A stretch of DNA of 64,000 nt from Heteronotia binoei (Eukaryota), in NCBI RefSeq assembly GCF_032191835.1, contig NC_083232.1:868001-932000 (forward strand). The letters are read 5' to 3'. How positions within the stretch are numbered: the stretch's first letter is position 1; every line of letters starts with the position of its first letter. This document shows positions 1 through 23,843 of the stretch, one piece after another. The position numbers were made by a program, and so were the translations under genes. The notes under the pieces were generated by a model, which did not search any database, was not told where the DNA came from, and saw only the letters and a list, made by a program, of their open reading frames with translations.

Positions 1-737
1 AACCAGTTCCTCTGGAGGGCCAATAACAGGACAGAGAGGCCAAGGCCTTCCCCTGAGAAGAACCTCAGAAGAAGAAGAAGAAGAAGAAGAAGAAGATATT
101 GGATTTATATCCCGCCCTCCACTCCGAAGAGTCTCAGAGCGGCTCACAATCTCCTTTTCCTTCCTTCCCCCACAACAGACACCCTGTGAGGTGGGTGGGG
201 CTGGAGAGGGCTCTCACAGCAGCTGCCCTTTCAAGGACAACCACTGCCAGAGCTATGGCTGACCCAAGGCCATGCTAGCAGGTGCAAATGGAGGAGTGGG
301 GAATCAAACCCGGTTCTCCCAGATTAGAGTCCGCACACTTAACCACTACACCAAACTGGCTCTCCCTGTTGGGCAGACCAGGGAAGGTCCAGCCTTCTGT
401 CTCACACAGTGGCCAGCCAGTTCCTCTGGAGGGCCAACAACAGGACAGAGAGGCCGAGACCTTCCCCTGAGAAGAACCTCAGAAGAGCCCTGTTGGGTCA
501 GACCAGGGATGGTCCATCTAGTCCAGCCTCCTGTCTCACACAAGGGCCAGCTAGTTCCTCTGGAGGGCCAACAACAGGGCAGAGAGGCCGAGGCCTTCCC
601 CTGAGAAGAACATCAGAAGAGCCCTGCTGGATGAGACCAGTGAGGGTCCATCTAGTCCAGCCTCCTGTCTCACATAGTGGCCAGCCACTTCCTCTGGAGT
701 ACCAACAACAGGGCAGAGAGGCCGAGGCCTTCCCCTG
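1..737 (-). repeat. Tandem ~133-bp repeat derived from a CR1 3' end, interrupted by a SINE
   Basis: Units such as ccagttcctctggagggccaacaacaggacagagaggccgagaccttcccctgagaagaacctcagaagagccctg are the reverse complement of the array units at 52977-54570. About three units lie at 363-737, and a partial unit lies at 1-68. Confidence 0.8.
68..362 (-). mobile_element. tRNA-derived SINE with L2-like tail (Squam3-like)
   Basis: The minus strand begins agagccagtttggtgtagtggttaag (A box) and ggtttgattcc (B box). It ends gagactcttcggagtggagggcgggatataaatccaatatc(ttc)n. More than 10 copies occur in the window. Confidence 0.85.
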
Positions 738-1277
738 ATGAGATCCACAGAGTCATTGCCTCTGAATGTGCTTATGAAGGGTCAACCCCACCCCCACCCC
801 CAATGACAGAGCACTAGTGGCAAAAATCATGAGAATGCAAAACTGCCACTTGTGCCCTTAGAATGTTGAATCTTGCAGGGTGGGAGGGGGAGGGCCAGGG
901 AAGGACAGCTAGGAATGGGTGCCCTGAAGGGAAGAAGGCCTGATGTTCCGCCCATGCGTTGGTCAGGAGGTTGCGTTGAGCCAGCTTAGCCTTTGGGGTC
1001 TCAGGAAGCATCTTCTTGCACTTCCTGATTTGGGGGCTGATTCTGCACAGAAGAATGAAAGTCCTCATGCAAAAAAACATTCAGGTTCATGAACGGGCAA
1101 CAAACGTCCTTTCCCTTTGCAACCTTTCCTCTGCAGCCAGTCAGAGCAAACAGCGGAATGCTTCCTCTTCTGTCCCACATTGGAGGATGTGCCCAGGAAG
1201 GGAGCTATGGGGAAGTGGAACATCTTTGGGCGTCCAATTATGCTTATGAAACAAGGAAGTGCATCTAGAGGAGAGAA

Positions 1278-1540
1278 GAACAAAGCAGGAGTCAAGTTTC
1301 ACCTTTAAGACCAACCCATTTTTATTTAGAACGTAAGTTTTCTTGTGCTCTTAAGCCCACTTCATCAGACGAGGAAACCGGCACAGGGAGCAAAGCCCTA
1401 CATAGCTGAGCAGAGCCGTACAGAGCTGGTAGGCAGTGGCCCAGAATGCAATATGGTACAGATTTAAGAACCAATGACAGTGAAGTAAAATTATCTGGTA
1501 GGCAGGGGTTGAGAAGGTAAGATGGTACAATGGCAGAATA
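1278..1540 (-). mobile_element. Penelope-like element 3' terminal segment with degenerate hammerhead motif
   Basis: The minus strand reads cgt-CTGATGA-agtgggcttaagagcacaa-GAAA-acttacg, then the ttggtcttaaaggtg...gactcctgctttgttc end shared by all PLE tails here. Confidence 0.75.
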
Positions 1541-1763
1541 CTATATCTCATTACATATACTTTACCCATTTTCACTATATTTTATTGTATTCCTTTTTCT
1601 TATGGCAAACTAGAATGATGCTTACATGTTAAAAAGTAGATTGGACAAGAACATCACTATCCAATGTATTTCTCTTTTAGCTGCATTGACGCACTCAAAA
1701 AGGGACTTTGGTTGCTTATCCCATTACATATATTGAACCCATCTCCCATTGTCATTGACAGAC

Positions 1764-2206
1764 TGTTGTGTCCTAGGTTCAAATGGAGAACTGTTACTTT
1801 TGGAGGGAACTGTTACTTTTGGAGGGAAGCTGAACAAGCCAAGCTTGTACTCCACACCAGGGTTCCAGAGAAGGCCTAAGCGTGCCCAGTCAGGGGAAGG
1901 ATTGAAACATAAGTAGCCAATCAACATCTAGGCTCATACTGTACCCTGATAGGCCCTTAGGCCTCTGTAAATAGCCAATCCATGTACATAGTTAAGGTCC
2001 AATCAGAAGGGGGCAAGAATTGTATAAAGGAGCGGGAGGTTTGAATAGAGCTCAGTCTGTGTTGGTGTTCCTGAAGTAAAGCTTGCTGAAATCACTCTCC
2101 GCCTCTGGTCTCTTACTGCGTCGACCCCAGTACTTTACACTGGCGACGAGGAAGGGATGCCAGTAAGAACCAGTAACAGTTCTCCATTTGAACCTAGGAC
2201 ACAACA
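1764..2206 (+). mobile_element. LTR-retrotransposon (Gypsy-like) LTR + PBS fragment bounded by perfect 35-bp inverted termini
   Basis: TGT...ACA termini. TSD cagac at 1759-1763 and 2207-2211. 1764-1798 is the exact reverse complement of 2172-2206. Inside are three CCAAT boxes, tataaa near 2023, ...tttaca at 2139, and PBS-like tggcgacgagg at 2141-2151. Confidence 0.75.
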
Positions 2207-2298
2207 CAGACAATCTCACATTTTGACATACTACTGTTTTGTTGCTTCTCATGCTCCTGCTACTCAGATCAAAGGTTTGCTCAATTTGTTAATCTTAC

Positions 2299-2561
2299 TA
2301 TTCTGCCATTGTACCATCTTACCTTCTCAACCCCTGCCTACCAGATCATTTCACTTCACTGTCGTTGGTTCTGAAATCTGTACCATGTTGCATTCTGGGC
2401 CACTGCCTACCAGCTCTGTACAGCTCTGCTCAGCTCTGTAGGGCTTTGCTCCCTGTGCCGGATTCCTCGTCTGAGGAAGTGTGCTTAACAGCACATGAAA
2501 GCTGACGTTCTCAATAAAAATGGGTTGGTCTTAAAGGTGCCACTGGACTCCTGCTTTGTTC
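2299..2561 (+). mobile_element. Penelope-like element 3' terminal segment (inverted partner of 1278-1540)
   Basis: Closely similar reverse complement of 1278-1540. Hammerhead-like cgt-CTGAGGA-a-gtgtgct-taac-agcacat-GAAA-gctg-acg at 2468-2507. Confidence 0.75.
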
Positions 2562-2829
2562 AACAGCTTCAGACCAACATGGCTGCCTGCTTGGATCTAT
2601 CTAGAAGAGAAAAGGTCAGGGAGGCTGCACTCTCTGGAGTTCCAGCGTTAGAGGCCTGGGTAGTTGGAGAACAATCAGGGTCTGGTTACCTGCCAGGCGA
2701 GGTGACAGATCCAGCCCGCAGATCTGGAAATTCTCTGCAAGCTGCCGTTAAATTAATTGCTGCTGGATGTGCAGTGAGAAGGTAGTTTGTATAAATGTGC
2801 ACACAAACCATGTGATGGGGAAGAAGAGG

Positions 2830-3125
2830 AGGTTTTATTTTTATTTTTTTATCCTTGAATTCCTACTCTCTCTTTTTAAAACAGATCTTATTTTATTGAA
2901 TCTAATCCAATACAAAGAGAGCCTAGGGAAAGTAAATAATAAAAATATAAATCTAACATACAAGAATCCAATTTAGATTACTGGATTCATATAACAAACA
3001 ATTTACAAAAACAATACATAATATGCTAGGTATTAAGAATTAAGAAATACCCTACAATTCATTCTATTAGGCAAAAAGGAAATATTCCCAAAGAATTCCA
3101 AAATTGGAGCCCAAAGCAAATCATA
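2830..3125 (-). mobile_element. Possible L1/Tx1 3' end
   Basis: The minus strand gives YDLLWAPILEFF, reminiscent of L1-clade ORF2 C-termini, followed by an AT-rich tail. Weak evidence. Confidence 0.3.
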
Positions 3126-3349
3126 ATATACAGTCAAATTATTTTATTATTATTTATTTAATTTATATCCCACCATCCTCGCCAAAGGCAGGCTCAGGGC
3201 CACGCAATCAGATTAGTGTGACCAAATCAGTATCATTTTTGAAGAAAGGGTTATCCATTGTCTTTCCCATTCCATACTGGTCCCATAGCTTATCATACCA
3301 CGTTTCAATCGTGGGGGTATGTGATGGGGAAGAAGAGTAGGCTTTGTAC

Positions 3350-3620
3350 CCTGCAGTACTGCAGTCCTAAACTCTGCTCACGACCTGAGTTCAATCCCCA
3401 GCAGAAGCTGGGTTTTCAGGTAGCTGGCTCAGGTTGACTCAGCTTTCCATCCTTCAGAAGTCAGTAAAATGAGTCCCCAGCTTGCTGGGGGGAAAGTGTA
3501 GATGACTGGGGAAGGCAATGGCAAACCACCCCGTAAAAAGTCTGCCATGAAAACATTGTGATGCAACGTCACCCCAGAGTCGGAAACGACTGGTGCTTGC
3601 ACAGGGGACCTTTCTTTCCT
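3350..3620 (+). mobile_element. Sauria SINE (Squam1)
   Basis: Diagnostic ggttgactcagc...ggggaaggcaatggcaaaccac...gcttgcacaggggaccttt (BovB-related tail). Confidence 0.85.
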
Positions 3621-5734
3621 CTACCTTAAGGAGCCTCAACATAGCTTGCCCTTCCCCACAACAGGCCCCTTGTGAGGTTGGTGGGGTTGAAAGAGTTCAG
3701 AGAGAACTGTGACTGCCCCACGGTGGAGGAGGAGTGGGGGCTCAAACCCACTTCTCCAGATTAGAGTCTCCCACTCTGAACCATGACCCCACACGGGCTC
3801 TCAAGGGGGTGAGGAGAGCCTTGGGATCCTTGCACGATTTGTGAGCAGACGTTCAGCCTGTTTCCATAAGAACAGCCTGGCCTTTCCCCATAGGGCGAAC
3901 TTTCTGATCCTGTTGGGGAGGGGCCGAGGCTCAGGGACAGAAGGCTTGTGATGCAGAAAGCTCCACGTTGACCTCCGGGTTTCTCCAGGACCAAGAGTCC
4001 GAGCGCAGGGGCTCAGAGCCGATGTGCTGGTGGGCCAATCTGGGGTTTGGAAGCCAAGCTTGGTCACCTGATTGGAAGGAGGGGCTGCAGCTGAGGGGTC
4101 TGAACTCATTCTGGGCATGCAAAAGGAAGGAGAGAACGGCTGCAAGATGGACAAATGGCCATCTTGGACAACAGGAGAGCTTCGAGGCAAACCTTGCCAG
4201 CAGGCCCCCAGCCACACAGCCGCCACACAGAGTCCCAAAGCCTGGATTTCTTGATATTATCTCAAGAAATATCAATCAAAAATTTAGTTATGTGTGGCCC
4301 AATTCAGAAATCTGATAAGTAGTTTAAAACAAAAACTAGGGATGGTTCTTAAGAACTCTTTCTCTGCCTAGTTTGGGGTTTCTGGGTTACATTTAACCAT
4401 TCATGTCATGCTTTGCATGGGCTTTTTGCTCTGGATTTGGGCGGCCTCCTAATAGCCCGAAATGAGGGCATATAGATTTGGCTTTCCCAGGTATAGCCAG
4501 ATCTGGCACAAAGAGTCATACCTGCTAGAATGGGTCTATCAATAAAAACCTTTTTCTGAATCTCAGCAAGAGGCCTGATTATTGAGGACAACTCAGGAGC
4601 TGATGAAACAGAGATGCCAGCACCAGGGGTTCTGCTAGAGTTGAACTTCTAGCCAGCATCAACTGGTAACAAGAAGTAAAAGAAACTGCTTCAAAACTAA
4701 CCCTGTGTGTGGTGGAAAGTATAGAGGTTCATTTCTTAAACATTCCCTGTGCTTATTCTACTTTTGCATGTTGTTAAACTAACAGAGAGAAAATTCTTCC
4801 AATTACTTCTTTGCTGGTTTCTATCCCAGCCCAGCTTTGCAAGGAATCTGCTTTGGCAAGGTTGATTTAATTTGGTTTCAATGCTTTGTCTAAGCATCAC
4901 TTTGGCAACATAATTGTCTATTGTTATTCATGTGTTTGGCACCCAAAGGGTTAGTTTCGTAGGGGTTTCTCTTTTGCTGTTGCAGAAGAGTTCAGTGGTG
5001 TTCTTGTGAGACAGAAAAACAGACAGAAAAGAAACTCATCCAGGTTAATTCCTTCTGTGTTTTTAATGTATGAGTGTGTGTATTATATATACAATATATA
5101 TTTCCTATCTGCTGCTGCCTGTCAGCACAGACTTCATATGTTTATTAAGAGCTTTTTCCTGATCCTTTGTGTTCTATTGGGGGGAAACATTTGAGGGGGT
5201 TTCCCAGAGATATTTATAAAGTGAGAATAAATACATATATTTTCCATGCATAAAATCCATGATCAGCTCCTAGAAATGGTCTTTTCTGGCTGGGGGTCAA
5301 GTGCATGCACCAGATCTGAAGCATTCTGACCACCACCACCCCCACCCCACCCCCCCACCCCACACACATATGACTCCCTACAGGTGGAAGGAACTCCGGT
5401 ATTTTGCTTCCTTTGTTCGCTGTGCTGCTGCGTTCCCTTGCTTGGTGGCCGGCAGGCTGTGGGCCTTTGGAAGGACTTCCATTTTTATTATGGCCCACAA
5501 GCCAATCAAAAGGAACAAAACAAATATAAAATTAACTACTACATAAAACCTCCCTCTGTATCACTTGTGTTAAAATCCTGACAAGATTAGAGTTAAAAGA
5601 TTAGAATCTGAGTAAATTATGCCCTGGACATTATCTCAACTTAACAGCAGAACATATAAACAGTAGTTCTTTGGTCAACCCTGCCAATAAGATTGTTAGA
5701 GCTTCCTTCTTGGAGAACATTTTCTTATGTAAAG

Positions 5735-6010
5735 ATGAAGATATTGGATTTATACCCCACCCTCCACCCCGAATTTCAGAGTCGCAGAGTGGCTCACAAT
5801 CTCCTTTACCTCCCCCCCCACACAACAGACACCCTGTGAGGTGGGTGGGGCTGAGAGAGCTCTCAGGACAGCTGCCCTTTCAAGGACAACCTCTGCCAGA
5901 GCTATGGCTGACCCAAGACCATTCCAGCAGGTGCAAGTGGAGGAGTGGAGAATCAAACCTAGTTCTCCCAGATGAGTCCATACACTTAACCACTACACCA
6001 AAGTGGCCTT
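5735..6010 (-). mobile_element. Squam3-like SINE
   Basis: Same sequence family as 68-362. Confidence 0.85.
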
Positions 6011-6289
6011 ACTCTTATTGGACAAGAGTAAATCCAAGCGGGTCTCTACACACAATCTGCAGCGCCCCAATGCTCCCATCGGGTTAGAAAAGAGCCAGAG
6101 AGTGCAGGAGCGCCTGAAAGACTACCGCAATTTATGGTAGGCCAGGAGCTGCCAAGAACCCCTGCTCCTTCTGCAGATGCCCTGCGCTTGCTGCTCCCAC
6201 TTGCGTTAGTCTTGGAGGCGCCCTTGGATCCCGACTCTTCCCCACTGCTGCAGCCCGCCGAACGCAGCGACTAAGGCTCTCTCCATCAC

Positions 6290-7150
6290 ACCTAGGCTTG
6301 GAAGGGGCGTTTTGGTCCCTTCCTGCGGTCAGGAGCGCAGGAGGCGAATCTCTGGGGTCTTCCCGAAGGGCGAGCTACCTGCCTGGCACAAAGGTGTCGC
6401 GCCGTCGGTCGTAGAGCATCCCCAGGTGCAGCGGGCGGCCCAGGGCCGGCAGCTCGTTGTCCTGCGTGGCCTGGAAGGGCATGGCGGCCGCGCCGTCCAA
6501 CGAACCCGGGAGCAGAGCCGGCGGCGGGGAGGGGGGTCCGGCGAGGGGATCGAGGCCACCAGCCGTCTGCCGTCTGCGCTGAGCGGGGGGCTCTCCCCGG
6601 GCGACCGAAAGGCCAGCAAGTCCCGTCGGCTCGGCTCTGCTCTCGTCTGGCGCGGCCCGCCGGGAGGCAAGCAGGGAGGCGGCCCGGGGGAGGGGGTGGG
6701 CGGGCAGCCGCCCCTTCCTTCCTTTCTTCCTTCCTTGCTCCTACCGCGCCCGTCGGAAGCGAGCCCCGGTTTCGGGAAAGGCCGCCCTTCCCAGACGGGG
6801 CGGGACTGGGCGCTGAGCTGGCAGCGGCGCCTCCCCTCCTCTCCCCTCCTCTCCTCCGAGGAGGACAGCGGCTCCTAACCGCCCCCCCCCCCGCAAGGAA
6901 GGCTGCAGTGGCCTTGCCCCCAGGGACCCGCCCGCGGAAGAGGAGCACCCAGCTCCCCCCCTGCTGTTCAGAGGAACTTGCGCCCCCCCCCAAGCCCTCT
7001 TCTTTTAGAGGGGAGGAGGTCGTTGCCCCCCCCCCCCCCAATACCGTCACGTCCAGCGACAACGGCCTGCAGGCCGCGGACAGTCCGAAGGAAGGAGGGA
7101 GGGAGGGTCTTTCGCCTTCTTGCAGGGACTCAGGGCGGGGGTGGGGGGTG
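6290..7150. promoter_or_regulatory. CpG island / promoter of the stonustoxin-like gene
   Basis: Very high GC and CpG density relative to the flanks. It contains a minus-strand ATG in a GCCGCCATG Kozak context at 6482. Confidence 0.75.
6383..6482 (-). CDS. First coding exon of a stonustoxin/verrucotoxin-like (MACPF/perforin-like) gene
   Basis: Manual translation from the ATG at 6482 gives MPFQATQDNELPALGRPLHLGMLYDRRRDTFVP(G). This matches the family N-terminal motif ALGRPFxLGMLYDxRxxxLIPG. It is followed by donor candidates AG|GCAGGT (exon end 6383) or AG|GTAGCT (exon end 6379). Confidence 0.75.
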
Positions 7151-7458
7151 GGGGAGGCTGCTGACTTCCACTTCCAGAAAGCTTCTGAGAAAGCTCCTCC
7201 TCCAAGTCAACTCAGCAGTCCTAGAAAGACCCCCCTTGTCAAGGATGCTCTCCCCTGAGCCTGCTTGGAGCACGGGGCTGGACTAGATGGCCTCTGGGGA
7301 CCCTGCTGCTGACTCCGTGTGATCCTGGGGTTCTATAAGAGGACCAGTCCTGGGGGGGGGGGGGGTTAAAAACGGCTTAATTAACAGGAAACAGAGAGCC
7401 AGTCTACATGGGCTCAGCACCAGGTGTACTAGCACTGCATGAAAGGTGGTAACCAGTG

Positions 7459-7903
7459 TGCCAAGCACCGATATTTCTCAATAACCAAGTCCTTTGTTTT
7501 AAATCAAAAGAAGGTTTATTGTTAGAAACTCAGGAGCTTTGCGAAGGACACAAGCCGTGGGAGTAATGGCCTGCAAACAGATACAGTTACTATATAGGAT
7601 GTCAGCAAGGTTACATTACAGATGCAGGGGTTCAAAGGTTACTAAGCAACTATCTGTTTTATTACTAAGTTTTATTACTAAGCTTTTGGAAAGATCAATT
7701 CTTCTCACACTTCTCTGTGAAGAGATAAAGCTTGCCTGGGTGAAATGGGGGAGAGGCAACTTGAAAGTACTAACGGCCTCTCTGCTATAAACATCCCAGG
7801 GCCAGATGTTTTCTCTCTGTGCCCTCCAGTGGAGGAGTTGGACAGGGCCGATGACTTGCTCTTTACATATTACATGATGGTACAGAAATGAGAATGCTTG
7901 ACA
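7459..7903 (-). mobile_element. Solo LTR (ERV/Gypsy-like)
   Basis: TG...CA ends with short inverted termini tgccaagca/tgcttgaca. 5-bp TSD cagtg/cagcg. TATA-like and AATAAA signals on the minus strand. It splits a CR1 RT SGVPQG motif. Confidence 0.75.
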
Positions 7904-8440
7904 CAGCGGGGTGTTGCAGGGCTCAGTGTACTAAGCCCAGTGCATTTTGACTTGTTCATTCATGATTTGGAGTTGGGAGTAAGCATCAAAGTGGCCAAGT
8001 TTGCAGATGACACTAAATTGTTCAGGGTGGTGAGAACCAGAGAGGATTGTGAGGCACTCCAAAGGGATCTGTTGAGGCTGGGTGAGTGGGCGTCAACGTG
8101 GCAGATGCGGTTCAACATGGCCAAGTGCAAAGTATAGCTAGGATTGGGGCCAAAAATCCTAGCTATAAATACAAGTTGATGGGGTGTGAACTGGCTGAGA
8201 CTGACCAAGACAAAGATCTTGGGGTCGTGGTAGAGAACTCACTGAAAATGTCAAGACAGTGTGCGATTGCAATAAAAAAGGCCAACGCCATGCTGGGAAT
8301 TATTAGGAAGGGAATTGAAAACAAATCAGCCAGTGTCATGATGCCCCTGTATAAACCGATGGTGCGGCCGCATTTGGAATACTGTGTACAATTCTGGTCA
8401 CCGCACCTCAAAAAAGATAGCGTTGGGAAAGGTGCAGAAA
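7904..8440 (+). mobile_element. CR1 LINE ORF2 RT fragment (degenerate)
   Basis: ORFs contain KFADDTKL, WQMRFN..KCKV, KKANAMLG and [14 protein letters not shown]. Confidence 0.9.
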
Positions 8441-9309
8441 GTCTTGCTCCTGTGTATAGATGGAGGAGGGGGAATCAGGCAGCTTGCCCACCTCACACAC
8501 ACGCACGCACCAGATAAAACAAGAGTAAGGGAGCGAGTCATGTGTGGTGAAGTGGTTAGAATGTCAGGCTAGGATGCGGGTGATCCAGGTTCGAATCCCC
8601 TCTCTGCCCAGGGACTTGACGGGGCCAGGCCCTTTCTTGGGCTGACCTGCCTCGTGGGACTGTGGTTGTTGTGAGGCTAAAAGGGAGGACTGGAGCTCAG
8701 CCTTGGAAGCCACTTTGGGCCCTGCAGGGGGAGAAAAGAAGGAAGTCAACCCGGCAGGAAGCCACACTGGCCAGGAGTAGCAGCCAGCCAAGCACTGTGG
8801 AAACAGCAAAAGTGAAAGGGAGCAGCTGCTCGGCTGTTCTGGGAATGCGCACCGTCTATGGGGGACGAGGCACACACCCCAGCAGCACTGCTGACAAAGA
8901 GGAAGAGAGTTTTGAAATCGGACATTTTGCATCACCACAAAGAAATCTCCTGCTTCTTATAATGTGACTGGCTTCCCTGCACTTCGTTACCTAAGAGGTC
9001 TGGAGAATGTGTGGACATTTCTTTTCCCCTAAATAGTATCAAATCTCATAAAGGGAGGCTGGATGGCTTAGAGTTGCCTGCTTCTGCCCTGGGCACGGGG
9101 TTGGCCTAGATGACCTCCAAGATCTCTTCCAGTTGATATGACACCTCCCAGATGGGAAAATCTGGCAGACAGAAAGCCTAAGCAGGCCAAGAAGTACAGT
9201 GCCAGTCCTCAGGTGGGGGCAGGGGATCCCCCGGTTTGGAGGCCCTCCCCCTGCTTCGGGGTCATCAGAAACCGGGATGGAGGAGGGAAATGTCTCCTGG
9301 GCACTCCAT

Positions 9310-9830
9310 TTGCTACCTTTCAGTCCTCAGGAACGGAGGCAGATTTCAATGAAAGAATATGTATTTTTGTCAGGAGATCCACAAGTTCAACTCTGAGTTC
9401 TTTCAGAACTCTTGGATGTATGCCATCCGGACCCAGTACCGAGCCCTGCGGCACCCCACTGCTTACCGTCCTCCACTGCAAAGACTGCCCATTTATACTC
9501 ACTCTCTGCTTCCTGTTTGTCACCATCTTAGTGGACAACTCTGATCCATTACCTGGTAGAAAAGTAACAGCTAACCCTTCATCTCTTTGAGATGAGACCT
9601 CCCAAACCAGAGACATTTCATTTCCTGTCGGCTTTCCCTCAAGATTTAGTTTAAAAATTGCTCTGCCACCTTTTTGATTTTAAGTACCAGCAGCTTAGTT
9701 CCATCTGGGGACAAGTGGAGACCGTCTCTTTTGTACAGCTCCCACTTGTTCCAGAAAGCATCCTAGTGCCTAACAAACTTAAACCCTTCTTCCCTACACC
9801 ATTGGGAGCACAAGGAATCTGGGTTCCTGG
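9310..9830 (-). mobile_element. Rearranged CR1 fragment (ORF1 esterase end + permuted RT pieces)
   Basis: The minus strand gives LYKRDGLHLSPDG (SGNH esterase-type ORF1 end), then QRVSING..SGVPQGSVLGP fused to DGIHPRVLKEL..VPED. Confidence 0.8.
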
Positions 9831-10848
9831 TCCTTACAGAGCCCCCAGGCTAAGAGCCACAGGCGAGGAGCCCTTTGACTCTCGCCCTTCGGCTCGCACC
9901 AAATGCTCGCGCCTCTGAACAATGTGGCTGAGTCAGCAATTCCCAGAAAGGCAGCAGGAAATTGCTTTCATGGTAACTCTGAACCAGGGATGGGAACAAA
10001 CAAAAAACATGGTTCGGTTCAGTTTGTAGTTCATGGCATGGCCGGTTCATGAACCGTGAGCCATCAGGAAGTTTTAGGGGCCAGCTGAATTGCCGAAGAA
10101 CACCCTCCCCACCTCCTGAGCATGCTAGAAACACCAAACTCGCAGCAGATCTCTGGCTGACTCTCTACCTGTTCCCAGGTTTGTTGAAGATTGGATTTAC
10201 GGGGTCCAAATTAGTGCACCCCCAAGAAGGAGCCCCAACCTCCATTATTTCCAAAGGGCTAAGGTCAAACCTGAGAATCTCTCATTAGAACCTGAAGGTA
10301 GGGGGCAGATCCTGTGCAATGTGCCCAGCAGAACCAGTGCCACTGTGGCAGTGCAAAAGCAGAGACTGAAGGGGGGCATTTTTGAAAGCCCAGCAGAACC
10401 AGTGCGATCCACTAGTGCCCAGCAAAGGGAATGTGCTAAGAGGAACAGGATTGCCCATTGGAGACTGTGGGAGAGTCTTGAAGGCCCATTAGACGTAAGA
10501 GGAGCCAGGAATGCCAGATGGACTTCCATGGGCTCCACTGAAATACATTAAAGTGCAAAATACTTGCAATGCAAATGCAGAGTGAATTTTCAATTCATGT
10601 TGCTGGACCCAGATAAACGGCTCCAGGACTGGAATAACAGGCCCCAGAATGGAAATATGGCCCCCAGAAACAGAATCAGTGTTCTGGGACTGGAATGACA
10701 GCCTCACAACTGGAATGACAGGATGGCATGGAGGAGCAGGAAGGACAGGTTCCAGGGTAGAATGCCAGCTCTGTTAAGGATATGTTGATTAGAGCCAAAT
10801 TAAATCAGGCTGCATGTCCAGTTCCCAAGGTGGTCGGGCACTTCAAAT

Positions 10849-11253
10849 GTGGGGATTGCTCCACCTGCCTACAGGCTTTGCAAACTAAGTCATTCAGGAG
10901 TCCGCATGGTCCCTTTAAGGACATTCAGTAATTGCTCTTCACTGCTTGATATGTGGGTGCCCATGAGTGTATGTGGGAAGTGCTACCCATTCCTTAAAAC
11001 CAGGATTTGTGAACATAATTCCAGGGTCCACCCCTCAGTCCCAGATGCCCCTTTAGCTAACCATTTTGTGGAAATGGGCTGTGGGGCTGAGGATTTCAAG
11101 TTTCTCGTGTTATCCCAATATGAGGGAGAACGTGGCCAGGAGGGAAATATTTGTCTGACTTTGCTAAGGGAAGAAGCATACTGGACCTTTAAATTGGACT
11201 CTCTAGCTCCAAAGGGTCTCAATGTAAACATAGATTACTCAGGTTTTCTGTAA
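10849..11253 (+). mobile_element. Penelope-like element GIY-YIG endonuclease C-terminal remnant
   Basis: LKTRICEH...PLANHF...LLREEAYWTFKLDSLAPKGLN..DYSGFL* is typical of the PLE endonuclease C-terminus. Confidence 0.8.
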
Positions 11254-11764
11254 GAATGTATATCCCTTTAAATGAAGTGCTGTGTGGTATAGCCTCCTTG
11301 TAAGATTTTTTGTTAAATGCAGTGTTGTTTTTATAGCTTTTTTTGGCAAGAATTCATTGTTTATCATTCTTGTTGCAAGAATTAAATTGGATTTTGTAGC
11401 CCTAAAGGGTCTTAATAGAAATTTAGATTATTCTGTTTTTCTGTAAGAATGTATATCTCTTTAAATGAAGTCTTGTCTGTTATAACCTCCTTGTAAGATT
11501 TTTGGTTAAATTTAGATTACTCAGTTTCCCTGTGAGAATGTACGGCTCCTTAAATGGTGTAGTCTGCTATAACTTCGTAAGATTTTTGTCGATTGCAGAG
11601 CTGTTTTTATAGCTTGTTTGCAAGAATTTATTGGATAGAACCTGGTTGTAAGAATTTTGGCTAAATGCAGCATTGCCTTTGAGCTTTTGCAAGCTTTTTG
11701 CAAGAACTGTTGATATATAGCCCTTTAAATAAAGTGGAGGAGGAGGAGGAAGAGAAAGAGGAGG

Positions 11765-11990
11765 AGGAAGAGGAGGATATTGGATTTATACCCTACCCTA
11801 CACTCCAAATCTCAGAGCCGTCACAATCTCCTTTACCTTCCCCCCCACCACCACAACAGACACACTGTGTGGGTAGGTGGGGCTGAGAGAGCTCTCCCAG
11901 AAGCTTCCCTTTCAAGGACAACTCCGTGAGATCCATGGCTGACCCAAGGCCATTCCAGCAAGTGCAAGTGGAGGAGGGGGGAATCAAACC
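11765..11990 (-). mobile_element. Squam3-like SINE, 5' truncated
   Basis: Same family as 68-362. It ends mid-head. Confidence 0.8.
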
Positions 11991-12329
11991 CCCCAATCAA
12001 AGTGATAATTGTTTAGTGCAGTGTTGATATGAGGGAGTCCCTTTTCTGGAGCCTGAAGAAGCAATGAATTCACAAAATGGCTGTTCCAGCTAGCGGCCCC
12101 ATTCTGAGAGTGGTGTGGCCCTTTTTTGTTATAAGGGCTGAATCTGGCATAAATGTCACTTTGTGAGGCCAGGCCATGCATGCCATAAAAGGAACATGAA
12201 GTATCAGAGATATAAACTTTATAAAGGCGATTTCAGGTGCTAAATGGCAATAGCATGTGAATGACAACAGCAGACTTGATTGGATTTGAGATGAAATGCA
12301 GAGGGGGAGCAGGGCATGAAGATACTAGC

Positions 12330-12620
12330 ATTGATAATGAGACAGGAAACCAAGGTCTCAATTCCATCCAGGAGGATTTAGACCAGGAGGATGCAAAGAA
12401 TAAATGGATGTAAATCTGACATTAGCCACCACAACATTCATCTGTGGCCTAAGAACAGCTGTGCTCTTACAAAGGCATTTCAAGGGGCGATTAGAGAGAG
12501 AGACTGCTGAGTTGCAACTGATAATGGAGCTCAAGACAATGCATCCTCCTGGACTGAATCAAGACCTAGGTTTCCTGTTTTCTTATCAATGCATGCTATT
12601 TTCATTTGGCATCTGAGAGA
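12330..12620 (+). mobile_element. Penelope-like GIY-YIG C-terminal remnant with short inverted copy
   Basis: HFKGRLERETAELQLIMELKTMHPPGLNQDLGFL. Positions ~12330-12385 are the reverse complement of ~12540-12595. Confidence 0.75.
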
Positions 12621-13366
12621 TATAAGGACCAATCCAACTGTTCTAATTCCCGATCAAGGTCTTTTTGAAAGAAAATAAATCTAGATAGGAACAGAGAAAT
12701 CCTATCATTTAAAAAAAAATCAGAAAAAAGCCAAAATAATTTCCTCAATGTATATTGTGCTTGTCAGAAGAATCCGTTCATTCACCCACCCACCCTCCCT
12801 TCCCCTGTAAAATAAGTGTGCTTGCACACAAAAACTTATACCGGGAATAAAATGTTGTTGGTCCTAAACCTACCATGGGGCTCCAACTTTTTTTGGTCTC
12901 TCTCTCTTTCCTCCCGTCTTTCTCTCCAAAAGAGGTGCAGCCCTGAAGAAGGAAGCAGATGCTCTGTGTGTGTGTGTCTGTGTGAGTGTCTGTGAGTAAG
13001 ACTGAGACAGAGGGGAGGGGGAGGGAGGCAGGAAACAGGAAGCAAAAGCTACTGAAGGAGCTGAGGGAAAAGAAAGTGACGGTGCAGCTGTAGCAGCAGC
13101 CCTGGAAAGGAACCTGGAGAAGGAAGTTGCTTAGGAGACAGATTTGAACCCTCTGCGAGCTGGATGCAGCCTGCAGGCCACATGATTGACACCCCTGCCT
13201 TAATCTATGCAAGAGCAACCTGCAGTCTTGCTCTGGTCTGGACTTTCCGTCCTAAAGTCAGATCCGGGTGGGTCTGAAGCTACAGAACAAAGTTAAGAGT
13301 CCAACACACTTTTATTTAGGGTGTGAGCCTTCATAAACCGTTGTTGGTCTTAAAGATGCCACTGGA

Positions 13367-13584
13367 NNNNNNNNNNNNNNNNNNNNNNNNNNNNNNNNNN
13401 NNNNNNNNNNNNNNNNNNNNNNNNNNNNNNNNNNNNNNNNNNNNNNNNNNNNNNNNNNNNNNNNNNNNNNNNNNNNNNNNNNNNNNNNNNNNNNNNNNNN
13501 NNNNNNNNNNNNNNNNNNNNNNNNNNNNNNNNNNNNNNNNNNNNNNNNNNNNNNNNNNNNNNNNNNNNNNNNNNNNNNNNNNNN
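13367..13584. other. Assembly gap (218 N)
   Basis: Run of N. Confidence 1.
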
Positions 13585-14118
13585 CGTCGTTTCCAACTTT
13601 GGGGTGATGTTGCTTTCACGGCAGACTTTTTACGAGGTGGTTTCCCCCCAGTAAAGCGGCCCCGTGGCGCAGAGTGATAAAGCAGCAGCACTGTGGTCTG
13701 AACTCTCTGCTCGCAACCTGAGTTCGATTCCGGCAGAAGCTGGATTCAGGCAGCTGGCCCGAGGTTGACTCAGCCTTCCATCCTTCTGAGGTCGGTCAAA
13801 TGAGTCCCCAGATTGCTGGGGGGGAAGCGTAGAGGACTGGAGAGGGCAATGGCAAACCACCCCGTAAAAAGTCTGCCGTGAAAACCTTGTGAAAGCAACG
13901 TCACCCCAGAGTCGGAAACGACTGGTGCTTGCACAGGGGACCTTTCCTTCCCCCCAGCAAGCTGGGTACTCATTTTACTGACCTCGGAAGGATGGAAGGC
14001 TGAGTCAACCTTGGGCCAGCTACCTGAATCCAGCTTCTACCAGACTCAGGTTGTGAGCAGAGAGCTCAGACTACAGTACTGCAGTACTGCTGCTTTACCA
14101 TTCTGCACCATGAGGCCA
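13585..14118. mobile_element. Sauria SINE (+, ~13660-13950) nested inside an oppositely oriented Sauria SINE
   Basis: The minus-strand SINE is split at its ttccccccag segment, with a complete plus-strand copy in between. Confidence 0.75.
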
Positions 14119-14741
14119 CACTGGTCCTAAAGGCAGTCTGTAAATAGGGTACATCAATAAAAATAAATTAGTATCACAGTGACATCTAGCAACCATGGAA
14201 GGAATTGCAAGCAATGTGGTCAAAGTTAGCAAAAAAGCCCAAAATTTCAGCCACTGAAAAGATCTGCTGAATTCATCAGTCATGGGTGGGAGGGGAGGAC
14301 AAGTGTGGGAGAGGGAGAGACAGGCCTTGTCCCACTTAAAGAAATAAATATTCCTCCCATCACTCAAGCTCTGCTGTTACCTTTCTACCTCCACCTTGAG
14401 AAAGAGGTAAAGCTCCATTTGTGGAGGGCAGAGGGTGGAGTGCTGCTTCTTGCTCCCGCCCCTCTTCTTTCTCTTGCCTGTTGTCCAATCCAGAGTTTCT
14501 AGCTTCTGTATGGAAGCCCGGCCAGGTGAGAACTTTGAGGACAGTCTGAATTCTTTAACAGGAAAGGATCTCAATTTACTAAACATAGAAACATGCTTTG
14601 CTAGAGAGCCCAAGCGTCTCCCAGCAGATTCCCAGGAGCCAGCAGCCAGGGTCAGAAGCCTCTCACCTGTTGCTCCTTGCTGGGGCCTGCGTTGAGAGCA
14701 ATGCTGCCCCCGGGAATGGAGGTTCCATTGAGCTACCACGG

Positions 14742-16430
14742 CTAACACCTGTTCAGGGACCCTGTCTCCAGGAATTGGTCAGATTCTCTAAAGAATGCCT
14801 GAGGAGACCGCTGTTTCCACCCAGGGCATAATTTTATAAACCTCTGTTGTGTTCCCCTTTTTGTTGTGTTTTCTAGACTGCAAAGTCCCCGACTCTTCCA
14901 TCTCTCCTTATAGGGAAGGTGCTCTAACCCCCTAATCAACTTGGTTGCCCTCCTCTGTACTTTTTCCAGCTCTGAAATGTCCTTTTGCAGAGACAGCGAC
15001 CAGAACTGTACACAGGATTCCAAAATTAGGCTGCAGCATAGATCTATAGAGAAGCATTACATGCAGGGGTGTCAAACTCATGAGGGCCGGATCTGACATA
15101 AGTGAGACCTTGATGGACTGGGCCATGTCGGGTTAGGCTGAACCATTTCAGGCCAGGCCATGCGTGTCCCTATTTAAGATTAGGTAGCAGAGATACAGAT
15201 TTTATAAAGAACACAAACACAAATATATATATATTAAACTTAAAACATGCTTAGTTAAAACATTAGCACTTACTGGTCTTAAAGATGCTTTCTTTGTATT
15301 TCTCCCATGGGATCTGGGGAACTGGGCAAAGGAAGCTCTGGCTCTTTCCTTCCTTCCCCAGGGGACTGGAAGGGGGGAGTCTCAGCCAATAGAAGGAAGA
15401 GAGGCTTTGCTCAGTAGCTCCACTGTGCAATTGAGAGAGCCTGGCAAAGCAAGTTATTCCTCCCCCCTTTCCCCCCCAAGGGAGGAAAATAGAGGTTTTC
15501 CTCTGTAGCTCCTGTGCAAGGAAGTAAGATATAGGAAGAAGGAAGCCGATGACAGTCGGTTGCTCAGGGGCCTGATAGGAGCCCCCTGGGGGCCTGATTC
15601 AGCCCCCAAACTGCATAGAATCAGAGTTGGAAGGGACCTCCAGGGTCGTCTAGTCCAACCCTTTGCACAATGCAGGAAACTCACAAACACCTCCCCCTAA
15701 AGTCACAGGATCTTCATTGCTGTCAGATGGCCATCTAGCCTCTGTTTGAAAACCTTAAAGGAAGGAGAGCCCACCACCTCCCGAGGAAGCCTGTTCTGAG
15801 GTACCGCTCTAATGGTCAGGAAATTCATAGAATCCTAGAGTTGGAAGGGACCTCCAAGGTCATCTAGTTCAACCCCCTGCACCATGCAGGAAACTCACAG
15901 ATACCTCCCCCTAAACTCACTGGATCCTCATTGCTGTCAGATGGTCATCTAGCCTCTGTTTAAAAACCTCCAAGGAAGGAGAGCCCACCACCTCCCAAGG
16001 AATCATATTTGACACCCCTGCATTACAGTATCAGTCACATTATTCTCAATCCCTGTCCTATTAATTCCTAACACAGATTTTGCCTTTTTCACCGCCACAG
16101 CACACCAGCATGACACTTTCATGGAGCTCTCCACTGCAGCCTCAAGCCCTTTTCCCCTCTCAGTTTCAGCAAGTTCAGACCTCAGGAGCCATACTTGAAA
16201 CTGGGTTCTTTTACATCACCTTCCACTTACCGACACTGAACTTCCTTTGCCGCATTGTCGCCAGCTCACTCAACTTTGGGAGATTCACCTGGAGCTCTTC
16301 ACAGCAGGCCTTCATTTTCACCATCCTAAATATTTTGGTGCGACCTGCAAACCTGGCCTTTTTACACTTAGCCCAAATTTCGGGACATGTATGTGTCAAG
16401 ATGCCTTGCCATTTTTTTCTGTAGTCTGAA
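14742..16430 (-). mobile_element. CR1 RT fragment interrupted by a hAT-type MITE
   Basis: Minus-strand [26 protein letters not shown] (14742-15050) continues upstream at 16021-16430. Confidence 0.8.
15064..16020 (+). mobile_element. Non-autonomous hAT-like DNA transposon containing two CR1 3'-end inserts
   Basis: TIRs caggggtgtcaaac / tttgacacccctg. Near-perfect 8-bp TSD cattaca(t)g / cattacag. CR1 tails lie at ~15613-15830 and ~15830-16000. Confidence 0.7.
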
Positions 16431-16649
16431 GTATTTCACTTTCCTGTCTCTCTGCTTTGCTTGCACCTATCTCTGTGCAACAGTTATCAAATGCTTTCAG
16501 CCTAGTCTCAAGGGTTACCAAGGCCACTCTTGAAGAGTATGTGCACCTGCAATTGCGATGGGAAATATTGGGGGGGAGGGATTGCCGCTTCCCGCTTTCC
16601 TTTGAAAATATAACGGTTCTAAGCAAATAGATCTAAGTTATATTTGTAC

Positions 16650-16872: not shown

Positions 16873-17209
16873 GAGCAAAGTGATGAGAGGGGCAAAAGCC
16901 CACCAAGTCATTTTTCACAAAGTCCATCTTGACTATAGCTGTCATGAGTCAATAAATATCCATCAATGAAATGGACTGTTTGTGATCATTGATCTGCTGG
17001 GGTCTTGACAGTATGAATGAATAGCACTGGCCCCAATCCTGATTCTTGTGGGACCCCCACTGCCCTCTTGCCTCTCCATGTTGTGATTCAGTTTTCAAGA
17101 GTTCTCAGCAGTTGAAATGTCTGTGTATATGTTTCACTTACCCATGTTCTGCTCTAATGCCCATGTTTTAATGTCAAAATGTCTTAATGTTTGGATGCTT
17201 CCCACCTCA

Positions 17210-17970
17210 AGAACGAGAAGATGATATTAGATTTATATCCCACCCTCCATTCTGAAGAGTCTCAGAGCAGCTCACAATCTCCTTTACCTTCCTCCCCCAC
17301 AACAGACACCCTGTGAGGTGGGTGGGGCTGGAGAGGGCTCTCACAGCAGCTGCCCTTTCAAGGACAACCTCTGCCAGAGCTATGGCTGACCCAGTGCCAT
17401 TGCAGCAGGTACAAGTGGAGGAGTGGGGAATCAAACCTGGTTCTCCCAGATAAGAGTCCACACACTTCAGCACTACACCAAACTGGCTCTCTATTAGAGC
17501 TATGGCTGACCCAAGGCCATTCCAGCAGCTGCAAGTGGAGGAGTGGGGAATCAAACCCGGTTCTCCCAGATAAGAGTCCACGCACTTCACCACTACACCC
17601 AACTGGCTCTCTATTAGAGCTATGGCTGACCCAAGGCCATTCCAGCAGGTGCAAGTGGAGGAGTGGGGAATCAAACCTGGTTCTCCCAGATAAGAGTCCA
17701 CACACTTAACCACTACACCAAACTGGCTCTCTATTAGAGCTATGGCTGACCCAAGGCCATGCTAGCAGGTGCAAGTGGAGGAGTGGGGAATCAAACCCGG
17801 TTCTCCCAGACAAGAGTCCACACACTTAACCACTACACCAAACTGGCTCTCTATTAGAGCTCTGGCTGACCCAAGGCCATGCTAGCAGGTGCAAGTGGAG
17901 GAGTGGGGAATCAAACCCGTTTCTCCCAGATAAGAGTCCGCACACTTAACCACTACACCAAGCTGGCTCT
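17210..17970 (-). repeat. Squam3-like SINE (17210-17490) extended by four tandem 120-bp head units
   Basis: Unit ctattagagctatggctgacccaagg...cactacaccaaactggctct starts at 17491, 17611, 17731 and 17851. Confidence 0.9.
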
Positions 17971-17974
17971 CCAG

Positions 17975-20900
17975 TTTGAGAAAGAAGAATACTTCAAATA
18001 AATGACTGGCTACATCGATGGTTTTGTCAGGAAAGATTCAGATTTTTGGACCATGGCTTACACTTTCGAGATGGTGGTCTTCTATCAGGAGATGGTTTGC
18101 ACCATACGGTGGTAGGAAAAGGGGTGTTTGGTAACAGCCTTGTTAACCTAATAAGGAGGGCTTTAAACTTAATTGTATGGGGGAGCGAGACAATAATTCA
18201 AAGCCTCGTATGATGCCAGAAACTGGGGATAAGAACATTAAAGATTTGCAAAGAGTGGCACATATGCTAGGTGATGTTAACTTGCAGGCTTGTACAGAAA
18301 CTAAACCCTCGGGATGCATAAAACATAGATTCCGATGTCTCTACACGAATGCATAGAGAATGGGAAACAAACAGGAGGAACTGGAAGTCCTAATAAAGGA
18401 AGGAGACTATGACATAATAGGCCTTACTGAAACTTGGTGGGATGACACCCACAACTGGAATATTAGGATTCAGAGGTACAACTTATTTAAAAGGGACAGG
18501 CAAATGAGAAAGGGCGGAGGTGTAGCAGTATACGTGAAGGAGGTACATACTTGTGAGGAAATATGTGAATCTGAGCATGGCAGCTCAGTTGAGAGTCTCT
18601 GGGTAAAAATAAAAGGAGTAAGAAATAACAGTGATATTATTGTGGGGGTCTGCTATAGACCACCAAGTCAGGCAGAGGACTTGGATGAGGTACTTCTACA
18701 GCAGATTGCAAAGTTCTCCAAGAGAAGGGGTACAGTGATCATGGGAGATTTCAATTACCTGGACATCTGTTGAAAGTCCAACTCTGCTAAAAATGAAAAG
18801 TCAAATAGATTCCTGACTTCTTGCTGACAACTTCCTTTTCCAGAAAGTGAAGAAGGAAACAAGGGGATCTGCTAACTTGGATTTGATTCTCACCAACAAG
18901 GAAGAATTAATTGAAGAAGTGGAAATAGTGGGCACCCTGGGCAGTAGTGACCATGTGATTTTGGAATTTACAGTCGTAGGGAAGGGAAAAGCTATACGTA
19001 GTCAGACTTGTAGGTTGGACTTCAGAAAGGCAAACTTTGATAAACTTAGAACTATGCTGGGTAAAATCCCATGGTCAGAAATACTTAGGAGGAAGGGGAT
19101 TCACGAGGGGTGGGAGTTTCTTAAAAGCGAAATACTGAAAGCGCAATCACAGATGATTCCTATGAGAAAAAAAAATGGAAAAAGCCTAAAGAAGCCAAAG
19201 TGGCTCCATAAACAGCTCTCTAAAGACTTGGAGAAATAAAAAAGACTCCTTTAGGAATTGGAAGGAGAGCCTTATAACCAAGGATGAATATAAACAAATT
19301 ACCAGTGCTTGTAGAGAAAAAGTTAGGAAAGCTAAAGCTCAACAAAAAACAACAAAAAAGGGTTCTTATGTTCAGAGTAAGAAAAAGAGCAAGGACATGG
19401 TAGGTCCATTGCGAGGGCAAGAAAGTGAAATTGTAGCGGGTAATGAAGAGGGAGGAACTGCTCAATTCCTACTTTTCCTCAGTCTTCTCTTCTGAGGGAA
19501 ACGGTGCTCAACATGGCAAAAACAGAACATATAAGGAGAGTATGAAGTTCCAACCTAGGATCAATGTAGGGGTAGTACATAAAACCTAGTTTCTTTAAAT
19601 GAAACTAAGTCCTCAGGGCCAGATGAATTGCATCCAAGGTTTCTAAAGGAGCTTGCGGATGTAATTTCTGAGCCTCTGGCTATTATTTTTGAGAATTCTT
19701 GGAGAACAGGAGAGGTGCCGGAAGATTGGAGGCGGGCGAATGTTGTCCCCATCTTCAAGAAGGGGAAAAAAGAGGATCGGGACCTGTCAGCTTGACGTCT
19801 ATACCTGGAAAAGTTTTAGAACAAATCATCAAACAGTTGGTTCTGGAACATTTAGAAAGAATGGATGTGATTACTAAGAGCCAGCATGGTTTTCTCAAGA
19901 ACAAGTCATGTCAGACTAACCTGATCTCTTTTTTAAAGAAAGTGACTATCTTGCTGGATCAGGGGAATGCTGTAGACGTCGTTTATCTTGATTTAAGTAA
20001 GGCTTTTGATAAAGTTCCACATACTAACCTTGTTGACAAGTTGGTAAAATGTGGTCTGAATCCTGTTACCGTTAGGTGGATCTGTAACTGGTTGACAGAT
20101 CGCACACAAAGAGTGCTTCTGAATTGTTCCTCATCCTCTTGGAGAGGAGTGACAAGTGGAGTGCCTCACGGATCTGTCCTGGGACCTGTTTTGTTCAACA
20201 TCTTTATCAATGATTTGGATGAAGGAATAGAGGGAATGCTTATTAAATTTGCAGATTATACTAAATTGGGAGGGGTTGCAAACACAGAAGAAGAAAGAAA
20301 CAGGATACAGGATGACCTTGACAGGCTGGAAAACTGGGCTAAAATCAGTAAAATGAATTTTAATAGGGATAAATGTAAAGTTCTGCATTTAGATAGGAAA
20401 AATCCAATGCATGGTTATAGGATGGGGGAGACTTGTCTTAGCAGTATTATATGCGAAAAGGATCTAGGGGTCTTAGTGGATCATACGCTGAACTTGAGTC
20501 AACAGTGTGATGCAGTGGCTAAAAAGGCAAATGCAATTTTGGGCTGTATCAACAGAAGTAAAGTGTCCAGATCACATGATGTGATGGTATCGCTTTACTC
20601 TGCTCTGGTAAGACCTCACCTGGAGTATTGTGTTCAGTTTTGGGCACCGCATTTTAAGAAGGATATAGACAAGCTGGAAGGGGTCCAGAGGAGGGCGACG
20701 AAGATGGTGAGGGGTCTGGAGACCAAGGAGCTGGGGATGTTTAGCCTGGAGAAGAGGCGGCTGAGAGGTGATATGATCACCATCAAGTACTTGAAGGGCT
20801 GTCATCTAGAGGATGGTGTAGAATTGTTTTCTGTGGCCCCAGAAAGTAGGACCAGAACCAATGGGTTGAAATTAAATCAAGAGTTTCCGGCTCAACATTA

Positions 20901-21125
20901 GGAAGAACTTCCTGACCATTAGAGCAATTCCTCAATGGAACAGGATTCCTCCTCGGGAGGTGGCGGGCTCTCCTTCCTTGGAGGTTTTTCAACAGAGGCT
21001 AGATGGCTATCTGACAGCAATGAAGATCCTGTGAATTTAGGGGGGAGGTGTTTATGAGTTTCCTGCATTGTGCAGGGGTTTGGACTAGATGACCCTAGAG
21101 ATCCCTTCCAACTCTATGATTCTAT
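17975..21125 (+). mobile_element. ~3.1-kb CR1 LINE, 5' truncated and inactivated
   Basis: ORF1 end (LLSGDGLH...LIRRALN). APE endonuclease (GLTETWW, YRPP, MGDFN). RT ([21 protein letters not shown]). 3' UTR ending ctatgattctat. Several stops and frameshifts split ORF2. Confidence 0.95.
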
Positions 21126-21217
21126 TTGAGAGGAAAGGCAGCAGAGAAACGTTTTGAATAATAAATAAATATGTTTAAGTTCAACTCTTGAACTTTGACA
21201 ATCCTTGCATATGTGAA

Positions 21218-21500
21218 GGAAAGGTCCCCTGTGCGAGTACCAGTCGTTTTTGACTGTGGTGACATTGCTTTCACAACGTTTTCACGGCAGACTTTTTACG
21301 GGGTGGTTTGCCATTGCCTTCCCCAGTCATCTACACTTTCCCCCCAGCAAGCTGGGGACTCATTCTACCAACCTCGGAAGGATGGAAGGCTGAGTCAACC
21401 CAGAGACGGCTACCCGAAAACCCAGCTTCCGCCTGGGATCGAACTCAGGTCGTGAGCAGAGCTTAGGACTGCAGTACTGCAGCTTTAACACTCTGCGCCA
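21218..21500 (-). mobile_element. Sauria SINE
   Basis: Family sequence. 10-bp TSD catatgtgaa at 21208-21217 and 21501-21510. Confidence 0.9.
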
Positions 21501-21599
21501 CATATGTGAACCAAAGACCTAAACTAGCCCTTGGCTCATTTTGAAATTAGGACTTTAAAACTCCTCTGAGCCAGGAGATTCTGGGGCATGACAGTAGCA

Positions 21600-21870
21600 G
21601 ACATAAGAACATAAGAGAAGCCATGTTAGATCAGGCCAATGGCCCATCCAGTCCAACACTCTGTGTCACACAGTGGCAAAAAATTTTTATATATATACAC
21701 ACTGTGGCTAATAGCCACTGATGGACCTCTGCTCCATATTTTTATCTAACCCCCTCTTGAAGGTGGCCATGCTTGTGGCCGCCACCACCTCCTGTGGCAG
21801 TGAATTCCACATGTTAATCACCTTTTGGGTGAAGAAGGACTTCCTTTTATCCATTTTAACCTGTCTGCTC
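21600..21870 (-). mobile_element. CR1 3' end (cttatgttcttatg-tailed type)
   Basis: The plus strand starts acataagaacataagagaagccatgttagatcagg. Confidence 0.8.
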
Positions 21871-23837: not shown

Positions 23838-23843
23838 TTTATT
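23838..23843 (-). terminator. Candidate polyadenylation signal of the unidentified ZNF gene
   Basis: AATAAA on the minus strand ~2.3 kb downstream of the stop at 26105. Confidence 0.4.

Follow-up and report, generated by a model that had tools for sequence, protein, structure and literature searches.

Close described relatives of the gene studied here encode the alpha and beta subunits of stonustoxin from Synanceia horrida (PDB 4WVM), to which neoverrucotoxin and verrucotoxin are related. The stonefish sntx genes consist of three exons with a tiny first coding exon (PMC10566576), the same layout as in the gecko gene described below. Among reptiles, hundreds of homologues have been publicly annotated; they include the stonustoxin-like (SNTX-like) proteins of the geckos Paroedura picta (XP_077160443.1), Sphaerodactylus townsendi, Eublepharis macularius, and Gekko kuhli, as well as turtle, crocodilian, and snake paralogues. 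Reptile sequences of the SNTX-like type that carry FN3 and a GTP-binding domain instead of SPRY have been described in work on the venom-gland transcriptome of Bothrops jararaca, whose authors cautioned that the differing domains preclude inferring the same function (PMC7579844). The literature searched assigned no function to a tetrapod SNTX-like protein, the FN3/GTPase fusions included.

We analysed a stretch of 64,000 nucleotides (hereafter, the 64-kb window) from Heteronotia binoei, or Bynoe's gecko, a gekkonid lizard. Sequence comparison indicated that positions 6482-6383 on the minus strand are almost certainly the genuine first coding exon of a stonustoxin-like gene. This gene is already in RefSeq, and its kind is already known. 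Beyond the annotation, the analysis makes modest additions: the GC splice donor, the constraint on the Heteronotia branch, a likely junction error, and the C-terminal anchors. The coordinates of the features are collected in Table 1.

Table 1. Features of the SNTX-like gene of Heteronotia binoei in the window, on the extended locus L001, and along the protein XP_060104203.1.
Feature	Window	Strand	L001	Residues	Remarks
Intron 1, first 6,382 nt	1-6382	-			SINE and LTR fragments; tblastn: without SNTX-like coding sequence
CpG island over exon 1 and presumed promoter/5'UTR	6201-6800	.			GC content and CpG o/e
Competing canonical donor GTAGCT	6373-6378	-			4 nt further; exon would end at 6379
GC-type donor GCAGGT, after CCAG	6377-6382	-			Sole in-frame donor; used by the RefSeq model
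Exon 1, coding part	6383-6482	-			ATG-led 100 nt; codons 1-33 and first base of Gly34
Presumed 5'UTR and proximal promoter	6483-6743	-			Without ATG; in-frame stop at 6743
Run of 218 N	13367-13584				Masked or gap
tblastn block 1			10001-10102	1-34	
tblastn block 2			19784-21805	34-707	
tblastn block 3			24768-25451	712-939	
MACPF_SNTX				10-177	Pfam, E 2.7e-6
Stonustoxin_helical				280-373	Pfam, E 1.8e-24
Thioredoxin_11				384-511	Pfam, E 1e-36
Two FN3				543-695	Pfam fn3, E 9.8e-18
AIG1				714-912	Pfam, E 9e-52

The first coding exon and its setting

A GCCGCCATG start at position 6482 of the minus strand opens 100 coding bases. The peptide read from it is MPFQATQDNELPALGRPLHLGMLYDRRRDTFVPG, and the frame then enters GCAGGTAGCT (minus-strand reading). 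No other ATG occurs within 450 nt upstream of 6482, and the nearest in-frame stop upstream of the exon 1 ATG is at 6743. The first-pass annotation had placed the exon at 6383-6482, and these limits coincide exactly with the coding portion of exon 1 when the gene is modelled in frame. It had also remarked that the exon escapes the list of open reading frames; this is correct, since the unspliced frame closes after only 35 codons and the list has a floor of 50 amino acids. The exon was hidden, as had been claimed, only from this list, the gene being annotated in RefSeq.

A search of the PDB with the 34-residue peptide returned stonustoxin alpha (E 4.8e-5, residues 4-30) and beta (E 2.4e-3) as the sole matches. 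Among 1.84 billion representative proteins, the top matches were lepidosaur SNTX-like proteins, whose residues 1-34 aligned with residues 1-34 of the query: those of Hemicordylus capensis (E 6e-15), Paroedura picta (“stonustoxin subunit alpha-like,” E 1e-8), and the tuatara, all of which bear the SNTX MACPF, helical, and thioredoxin-like domains. The only Pfam match of the 34-mer alone, MACPF_SNTX at positions 3-25, was below threshold (E 0.11) because the peptide is short, and it is no evidence against membership in the family. The peptide was identical at 34/34 positions to the N-terminus of XP_060104203.1, a RefSeq protein of Heteronotia binoei that is 939 aa long and named “stonustoxin subunit alpha-like.” The initial assignment of the exon to a lizard MACPF gene of the stonustoxin family was borne out.

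The exon 1 peptide contains the N-terminal SNTX block ALGRPxxLGMLYDxRxDxxxPG, and the block encoded by the exon (ALGRPLHLGMLYD...PG) is the one that the family conserves most strongly. In 30 tetrapod homologues, residues L14, G15, R16, P17, L20, G21, L23, Y24, D25, P33, and G34 were invariant, and the densest block of invariant residues was the exon 1 product. When the Paroedura protein was used as the query, at least 1,870 relatives with E <= 1e-10 were recovered among 8,000 scored candidates; they spanned turtles, crocodilians, squamates, the tuatara, marsupials, caecilians, and fish.

The GC content at 6201-6800 was 0.62-0.77 and the CpG o/e ratio 0.72-0.87, against an o/e of 0.33 for the whole window. 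If a CpG island is taken to require GC > 0.5 and CpG o/e > 0.6 across 200 bp or more at the gene start, the exon 1 region is such an island, as the first-pass annotation had described. This setting is common to just two of the four orthologous loci compared: the island was also found at exon 1 in Sphaerodactylus and Eublepharis, and by the same criterion there was none at exon 1 of Paroedura and Hemicordylus. As a sequence feature, the island is compatible with broad expression of the SNTX-like gene.

The gene borders a KRAB-ZNF cluster. Pfam searches identified three long C2H2 zinc-finger ORFs and a KRAB-box exon upstream of the third (26108-27004, 43595-45280, 56323-57654, and 58679-59194, all on the minus strand). 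GC-rich stretches with long spurious ORFs at approximately 28.7-30.5 kb and 49.5-50.7 kb may be promoters of the KRAB-ZNF genes. The window also contains fragments of LINE endonuclease/reverse transcriptase at 18360-20901 (plus strand), 8086-8517 (plus strand), and 32214-32732 (minus strand); a 400-aa ORF at 19699-20901 matched RVT_1 in Pfam. Copies of a squamate SINE were present at 17207-17713 (minus strand), 27718-28170 (minus strand), and 5671-6087, and tandem arrays of one SINE core occurred at two places with the repeated translated units …KCVDSYLGEPGLIPHSSTC….

Gene structure beyond the window

The surrounding sequence was examined on the locus L001 (GCA_032191835.1, CM063334.1), on which a position equals 16483 minus the window position. 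L001 was the reverse complement of window positions 1-16482 over all 16,482 shared bases, with the exception of 218 N-masked positions. A tblastn search of L001 with XP_060104203.1 yielded three colinear blocks spanning the whole protein. The gene comprises three coding exons, the second and third of which lie past the left edge of the window. Exon 1 has 100 nt; exon 2, of about 2 kb, encodes the remainder of the MACPF/CDC domain, the helical and thioredoxin-like domains, and the two FN3 domains; and exon 3 encodes the GIMAP/AIG1 GTPase with CCLS at the end. The exon-2 acceptor reads tttgcag/GAGTG (the slash marks the boundary between intron and exon), and exon 2 begins at L001 19785; it opens with GAGTG, and therefore codon 34 is split as G/GA.

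Intron 1 occupies L001 10101-19784. As it extends for 9,684 nt from window position 6382, exon 2 lies about 3.3 kb past the left edge. In three relatives this intron has 1.8-2.6 kb, as against 9.7 kb in Heteronotia. Within it, repeat-like pile-ups of contigs were observed at window positions 2400-2600, 3600-3800, and 5600-6200, and the SINE at 5.7-6.1 kb, just inside the intron, attracted very deep pile-ups of contigs from a related species.

A tblastn search of the 64-kb window with ten SNTX-like proteins detected nothing beyond exon 1, in agreement with the first-pass annotation, which had found no second exon to the left of the first and supposed that exon 2 either lay beyond the edge or had decayed. 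The former proved right and the latter wrong: downstream of the ATG, the same contig carries an intact exon 2 at 9.7 kb and an intact exon 3 at 14.7 kb. The other tblastn matches in the window were C2H2 zinc fingers, drawn by a chimeric carp model. The lack of more homologous exons in 1-6380 or in the rest of the 64 kb would suit an orphan or pseudo-exon without a downstream gene; this reading is refuted by the intact exons 2 and 3, and its probability is practically nil.

Searches of about 83 kb, made up of the 64-kb window and a further 19 kb of L001, revealed neither a second SNTX-like copy nor a tandem alpha/beta partner. An enkurin-domain gene is located directly downstream of the SNTX-like gene both in Heteronotia (L001 30987-35454) and in Paroedura (L004), and this common neighbour supports orthology. 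The Eublepharis gene model runs an AIG1 gene lying upstream together with the SNTX-like exon 1.

The junction between exons 2 and 3 in the RefSeq model was unusual. The model runs from the exon 2 end at L001 21805 through an 18-nt piece (23074-23091), which encodes residues 708-713 of XP_060104203.1 (QTRGSP) and lacks AG/GT flanks, to an acceptor at 24774. A canonical micro-exon with AG/GT flanks that would explain these residues was sought and not found. A consensus donor, CAG/gtaagtct, is present at L001 21866 in phase 1, 61 nt past the annotated end of exon 2. Joined to the ancestral acceptor cacag/GA at 24754, it gives an uninterrupted frame of 960 codons, and the linker …EKVRERSSSVCIPSPRPRTTSSGKGSESELRIILAGKS… of the 960-aa product aligns with those of Sphaerodactylus, Eublepharis, and Paroedura. 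On these sequence features, the RefSeq junction is probably wrong, and the true join is probably 21866-24754.

Splice donor of exon 1 and constraint on the coding sequence

The donor of exon 1 was compared at the orthologous loci of Sphaerodactylus townsendi, Hemicordylus capensis, Paroedura picta, and Eublepharis macularius. In all four, exon 1 measures 100 nt from the ATG and ends in CCAG, the exon-2 acceptor is homologous, and CCAG is followed by a canonical GT donor (gtaagc, gtacgt, gtagga, or gtacgc). Heteronotia, alone of the five species, reads CCAG/gcaggtagct, with no GT at the ancestral donor position; the assembly letters at 6382-6375 are GCAGGTAG. The change could have arisen either by a T to C substitution at +2 or by a 4-base insertion through duplication of CAGG, as the flanks fit both.

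GC-AG introns are a known minority class and make up roughly 1% of introns in vertebrates. Since Heteronotia has no GT at the ancestral position, a productive mRNA would need the GC donor CAG/GCAGGT at 6383/6382. Elsewhere this donor fits the consensus (-3C, -2A, -1G, +3A, +5G, and +6T). The competing GT donor has no G at +5. Splicing at the GT after 6379 was computed to add 4 nt, shift the frame, and lead to a stop at codon 42, and inspection of exon 2 by hand found no acceptor with AG at a usable offset that would rescue this donor. A GT to GC change at a conserved donor site with a frameshifting GT adjacent constitutes a natural test of donor choice.

One explanation of the unusual donor is that the four extra bases stem from an error in assembly or consensus calling, the true sequence being CCAG/GT. 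The donor-region stretch CAGGCAGG does resemble a short tandem CAGG duplication, and the region is very GC-rich; however, the window agrees with the public copy at every unmasked base, the two being the same assembly, and there is no sign of low quality. We consider such an error very unlikely.

A more serious alternative is a leaky or recently disabled gene, in which the spliceosome mainly uses the GT after 6379 and runs into the stop at codon 42, so that the locus would be a young unitary pseudogene or weakly productive. This would be in keeping with the replacement of the CCAG/GT shared by 4/4 orthologues by CCAG/GCAG/GTAGCT in Heteronotia, with the computed frameshift and stop, and with the two overlapping donors, which by inspection are similar in U1 complementarity. 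However, the GC donor is otherwise typical of working GC-AG introns, the GT donor is the one without the G at +5, and the RefSeq model carries no low-quality flag. The coding sequence speaks against the same alternative: the 2.9-kb ORF is intact, with no internal stop, and on Nei-Gojobori distances calculated from codon alignments, with a three-taxon split of branches, exon 2 gave a dN/dS of 0.23-0.32 on the Heteronotia branch and exon 3 one of 0.25-0.30, neither of which exceeded the values on the Paroedura branch. These low values argue for purifying selection over most of the Heteronotia branch and hence for a working gene, although a very recent loss would be compatible with them. Taken together, we regard the leaky or disabled state as unlikely and suggest that the gene is probably functional through the GC donor.

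Contigs of a related species from four runs (three presumed to be RNA, the fourth of unspecified kind) matched window positions 6382-6466 or 6382-6485 with 90-94% identity. The match breaks off at the end of exon 1, and the contigs continue for 70-927 nt that did not match the window intron. Such contigs lend weak support to splicing at this boundary: they fit spliced transcripts in a relative, and would also fit genomic DNA with a diverged intron.

Protein architecture and comparison with known systems

The first-pass annotation had proposed scanning the full product for FN3, GTPase, and PRY-SPRY domains. FN3 and a GTPase were found, and PRY-SPRY was not: XP_060104203.1 had no Pfam match to PRY or SPRY and carries two FN3 and an AIG1 domain in that place. 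Residues 8-516 aligned colinearly and nearly without gaps with residues 4-512 of stonustoxin alpha (4WVM_A; E 1.3e-92), and residues 712-909 aligned with GIMAP2 (E about 1e-42). The P-loop GKSGSGKS (GxxxxGKS) is intact and aligned to GKTGTGKS of GIMAP2. The G4 region reads TQEEE and not THKED as in GIMAP2, and the guanine specificity is therefore uncertain.

An AlphaFold2 model of residues 1-520, built with 30 homologues, was good over the helical and thioredoxin-like domains and poor over the MACPF domain (mean pLDDT 61); pLDDT was below 50 at residues 1-44, 117-156, and 188-269, the first of these ranges including the exon 1 product. In a Foldseek search with this model, only chains A and B of 4WVM were retrieved at E < 0.001 (8e-24 and 7e-21), with weak MACPF and thioredoxin matches at lower ranks.

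On direct reading, residues 1-30 are polar or charged (D8, E10, R16, D25, and R26-28) without a hydrophobic core; like stonustoxin, the protein apparently has no N-terminal signal peptide. At the other end, a basic stretch precedes a terminal, CaaX-like CCLS (L001 25440-25454). Among the orthologues, the Gekko kuhli protein ends in CCLS and that of Eublepharis in CFLN, and Paroedura isoform X2 and Sphaerodactylus have hydrophobic tails; each therefore carries some putative membrane-anchoring end. The two anchor types appear to be interchangeable among orthologues, and these ends point to an intracellular role at membranes.

These features suggest a possible mechanism. The protein would be made in the cytosol, because it has no signal peptide, and in Heteronotia the prenylation-like C-terminus would tether it to a membrane. 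The MACPF domain would oligomerise and insert a beta-barrel pore, like stonustoxin, and the GTPase would serve as a switch or targeting module replacing the PRY-SPRY of the fish toxins. By analogy with GIMAPs, guanylate-binding proteins (GBPs), and perforin-2, an intracellular innate-immune role would be the likeliest; that the protein is an immune pore-former is nevertheless put forward tentatively. As a whole, we consider the following account likely: the exon is the first of a single-copy three-exon SNTX-GIMAP gene that would be spliced through a GC donor and whose product would be a cytosolic, membrane-tethered pore-former. A broader proposal is more speculative and, in our judgement, rather doubtful: the uncharacterised tetrapod SNTX-MACPF/FN3/GIMAP class may consist of cytosolic, membrane-tethered, GTP-switched immune pore-formers, with the output in Heteronotia set by competition between the GC and GT donors 4 nt apart.

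Secretion as a cytolysin of the venom or defensive type, in the manner of fish stonustoxin, was also considered. To our knowledge, geckos have no venom apparatus, which counts against such a function. The homology to stonustoxin extends over 509 residues; however, PRY-SPRY is replaced by FN3 and a GIMAP GTPase with a CaaX-like end, and a tandem alpha/beta partner is lacking in about 83 kb. SNTX-like transcripts have been reported from a snake venom gland, yet the authors of that study themselves caution against inferring the same function (PMC7579844). A secreted cytolysin is therefore scarcely credible, and the cytosolic, membrane-tethered pore-former is the preferred reading.

Sequence, fold match, gene structure, and domain order place this protein in the SNTX branch of MACPF/CDC, although it lacks two traits of the venom toxins, PRY-SPRY and the tandem alpha/beta gene pair. 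The gecko protein and stonustoxin alpha/beta have the N-terminal motif and the order of MACPF/CDC, helical, and thioredoxin-like domains in common, and both lack a signal peptide. They differ at the other end, where stonustoxin carries PRY-SPRY (B30.2) and the gecko protein two FN3 domains followed by the AIG1/GIMAP GTPase. The stonustoxin genes form a tandem alpha/beta pair, whereas the Heteronotia locus has one gene; the host of stonustoxin is a venomous fish, whereas here it is a non-venomous gecko, whose protein is a putative pore-former. The gecko orthologues have a 100-nt exon 1, the acceptor, and the order of domains in common with Heteronotia; their full-length identity to the Paroedura query is 66-70%, a range that also takes in the Heteronotia protein.

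GIMAP2 (PDB 2XTM) is homologous to the C-terminal 200 residues, with a canonical P-loop in both proteins. In the gecko protein, in contrast, the GIMAP GTPase follows, as part of one fusion, a module of 700 residues that comprises the pore-former and FN3, and its G4 deviates. GIMAPs are tail-anchored, whereas some SNTX-GIMAP orthologues have a CaaX-like end instead and others a hydrophobic tail. Perforin-2/MPEG1 and the GBPs are comparable by mechanism only, and their homology to the gecko protein ends with the fold of the MACPF superfamily or the P-loop. GBPs also pair a GTPase with a CaaX box, and the idea shared with perforin-2 and the GBPs is that of a membrane-tethered immune effector attacking membranes from the host side.
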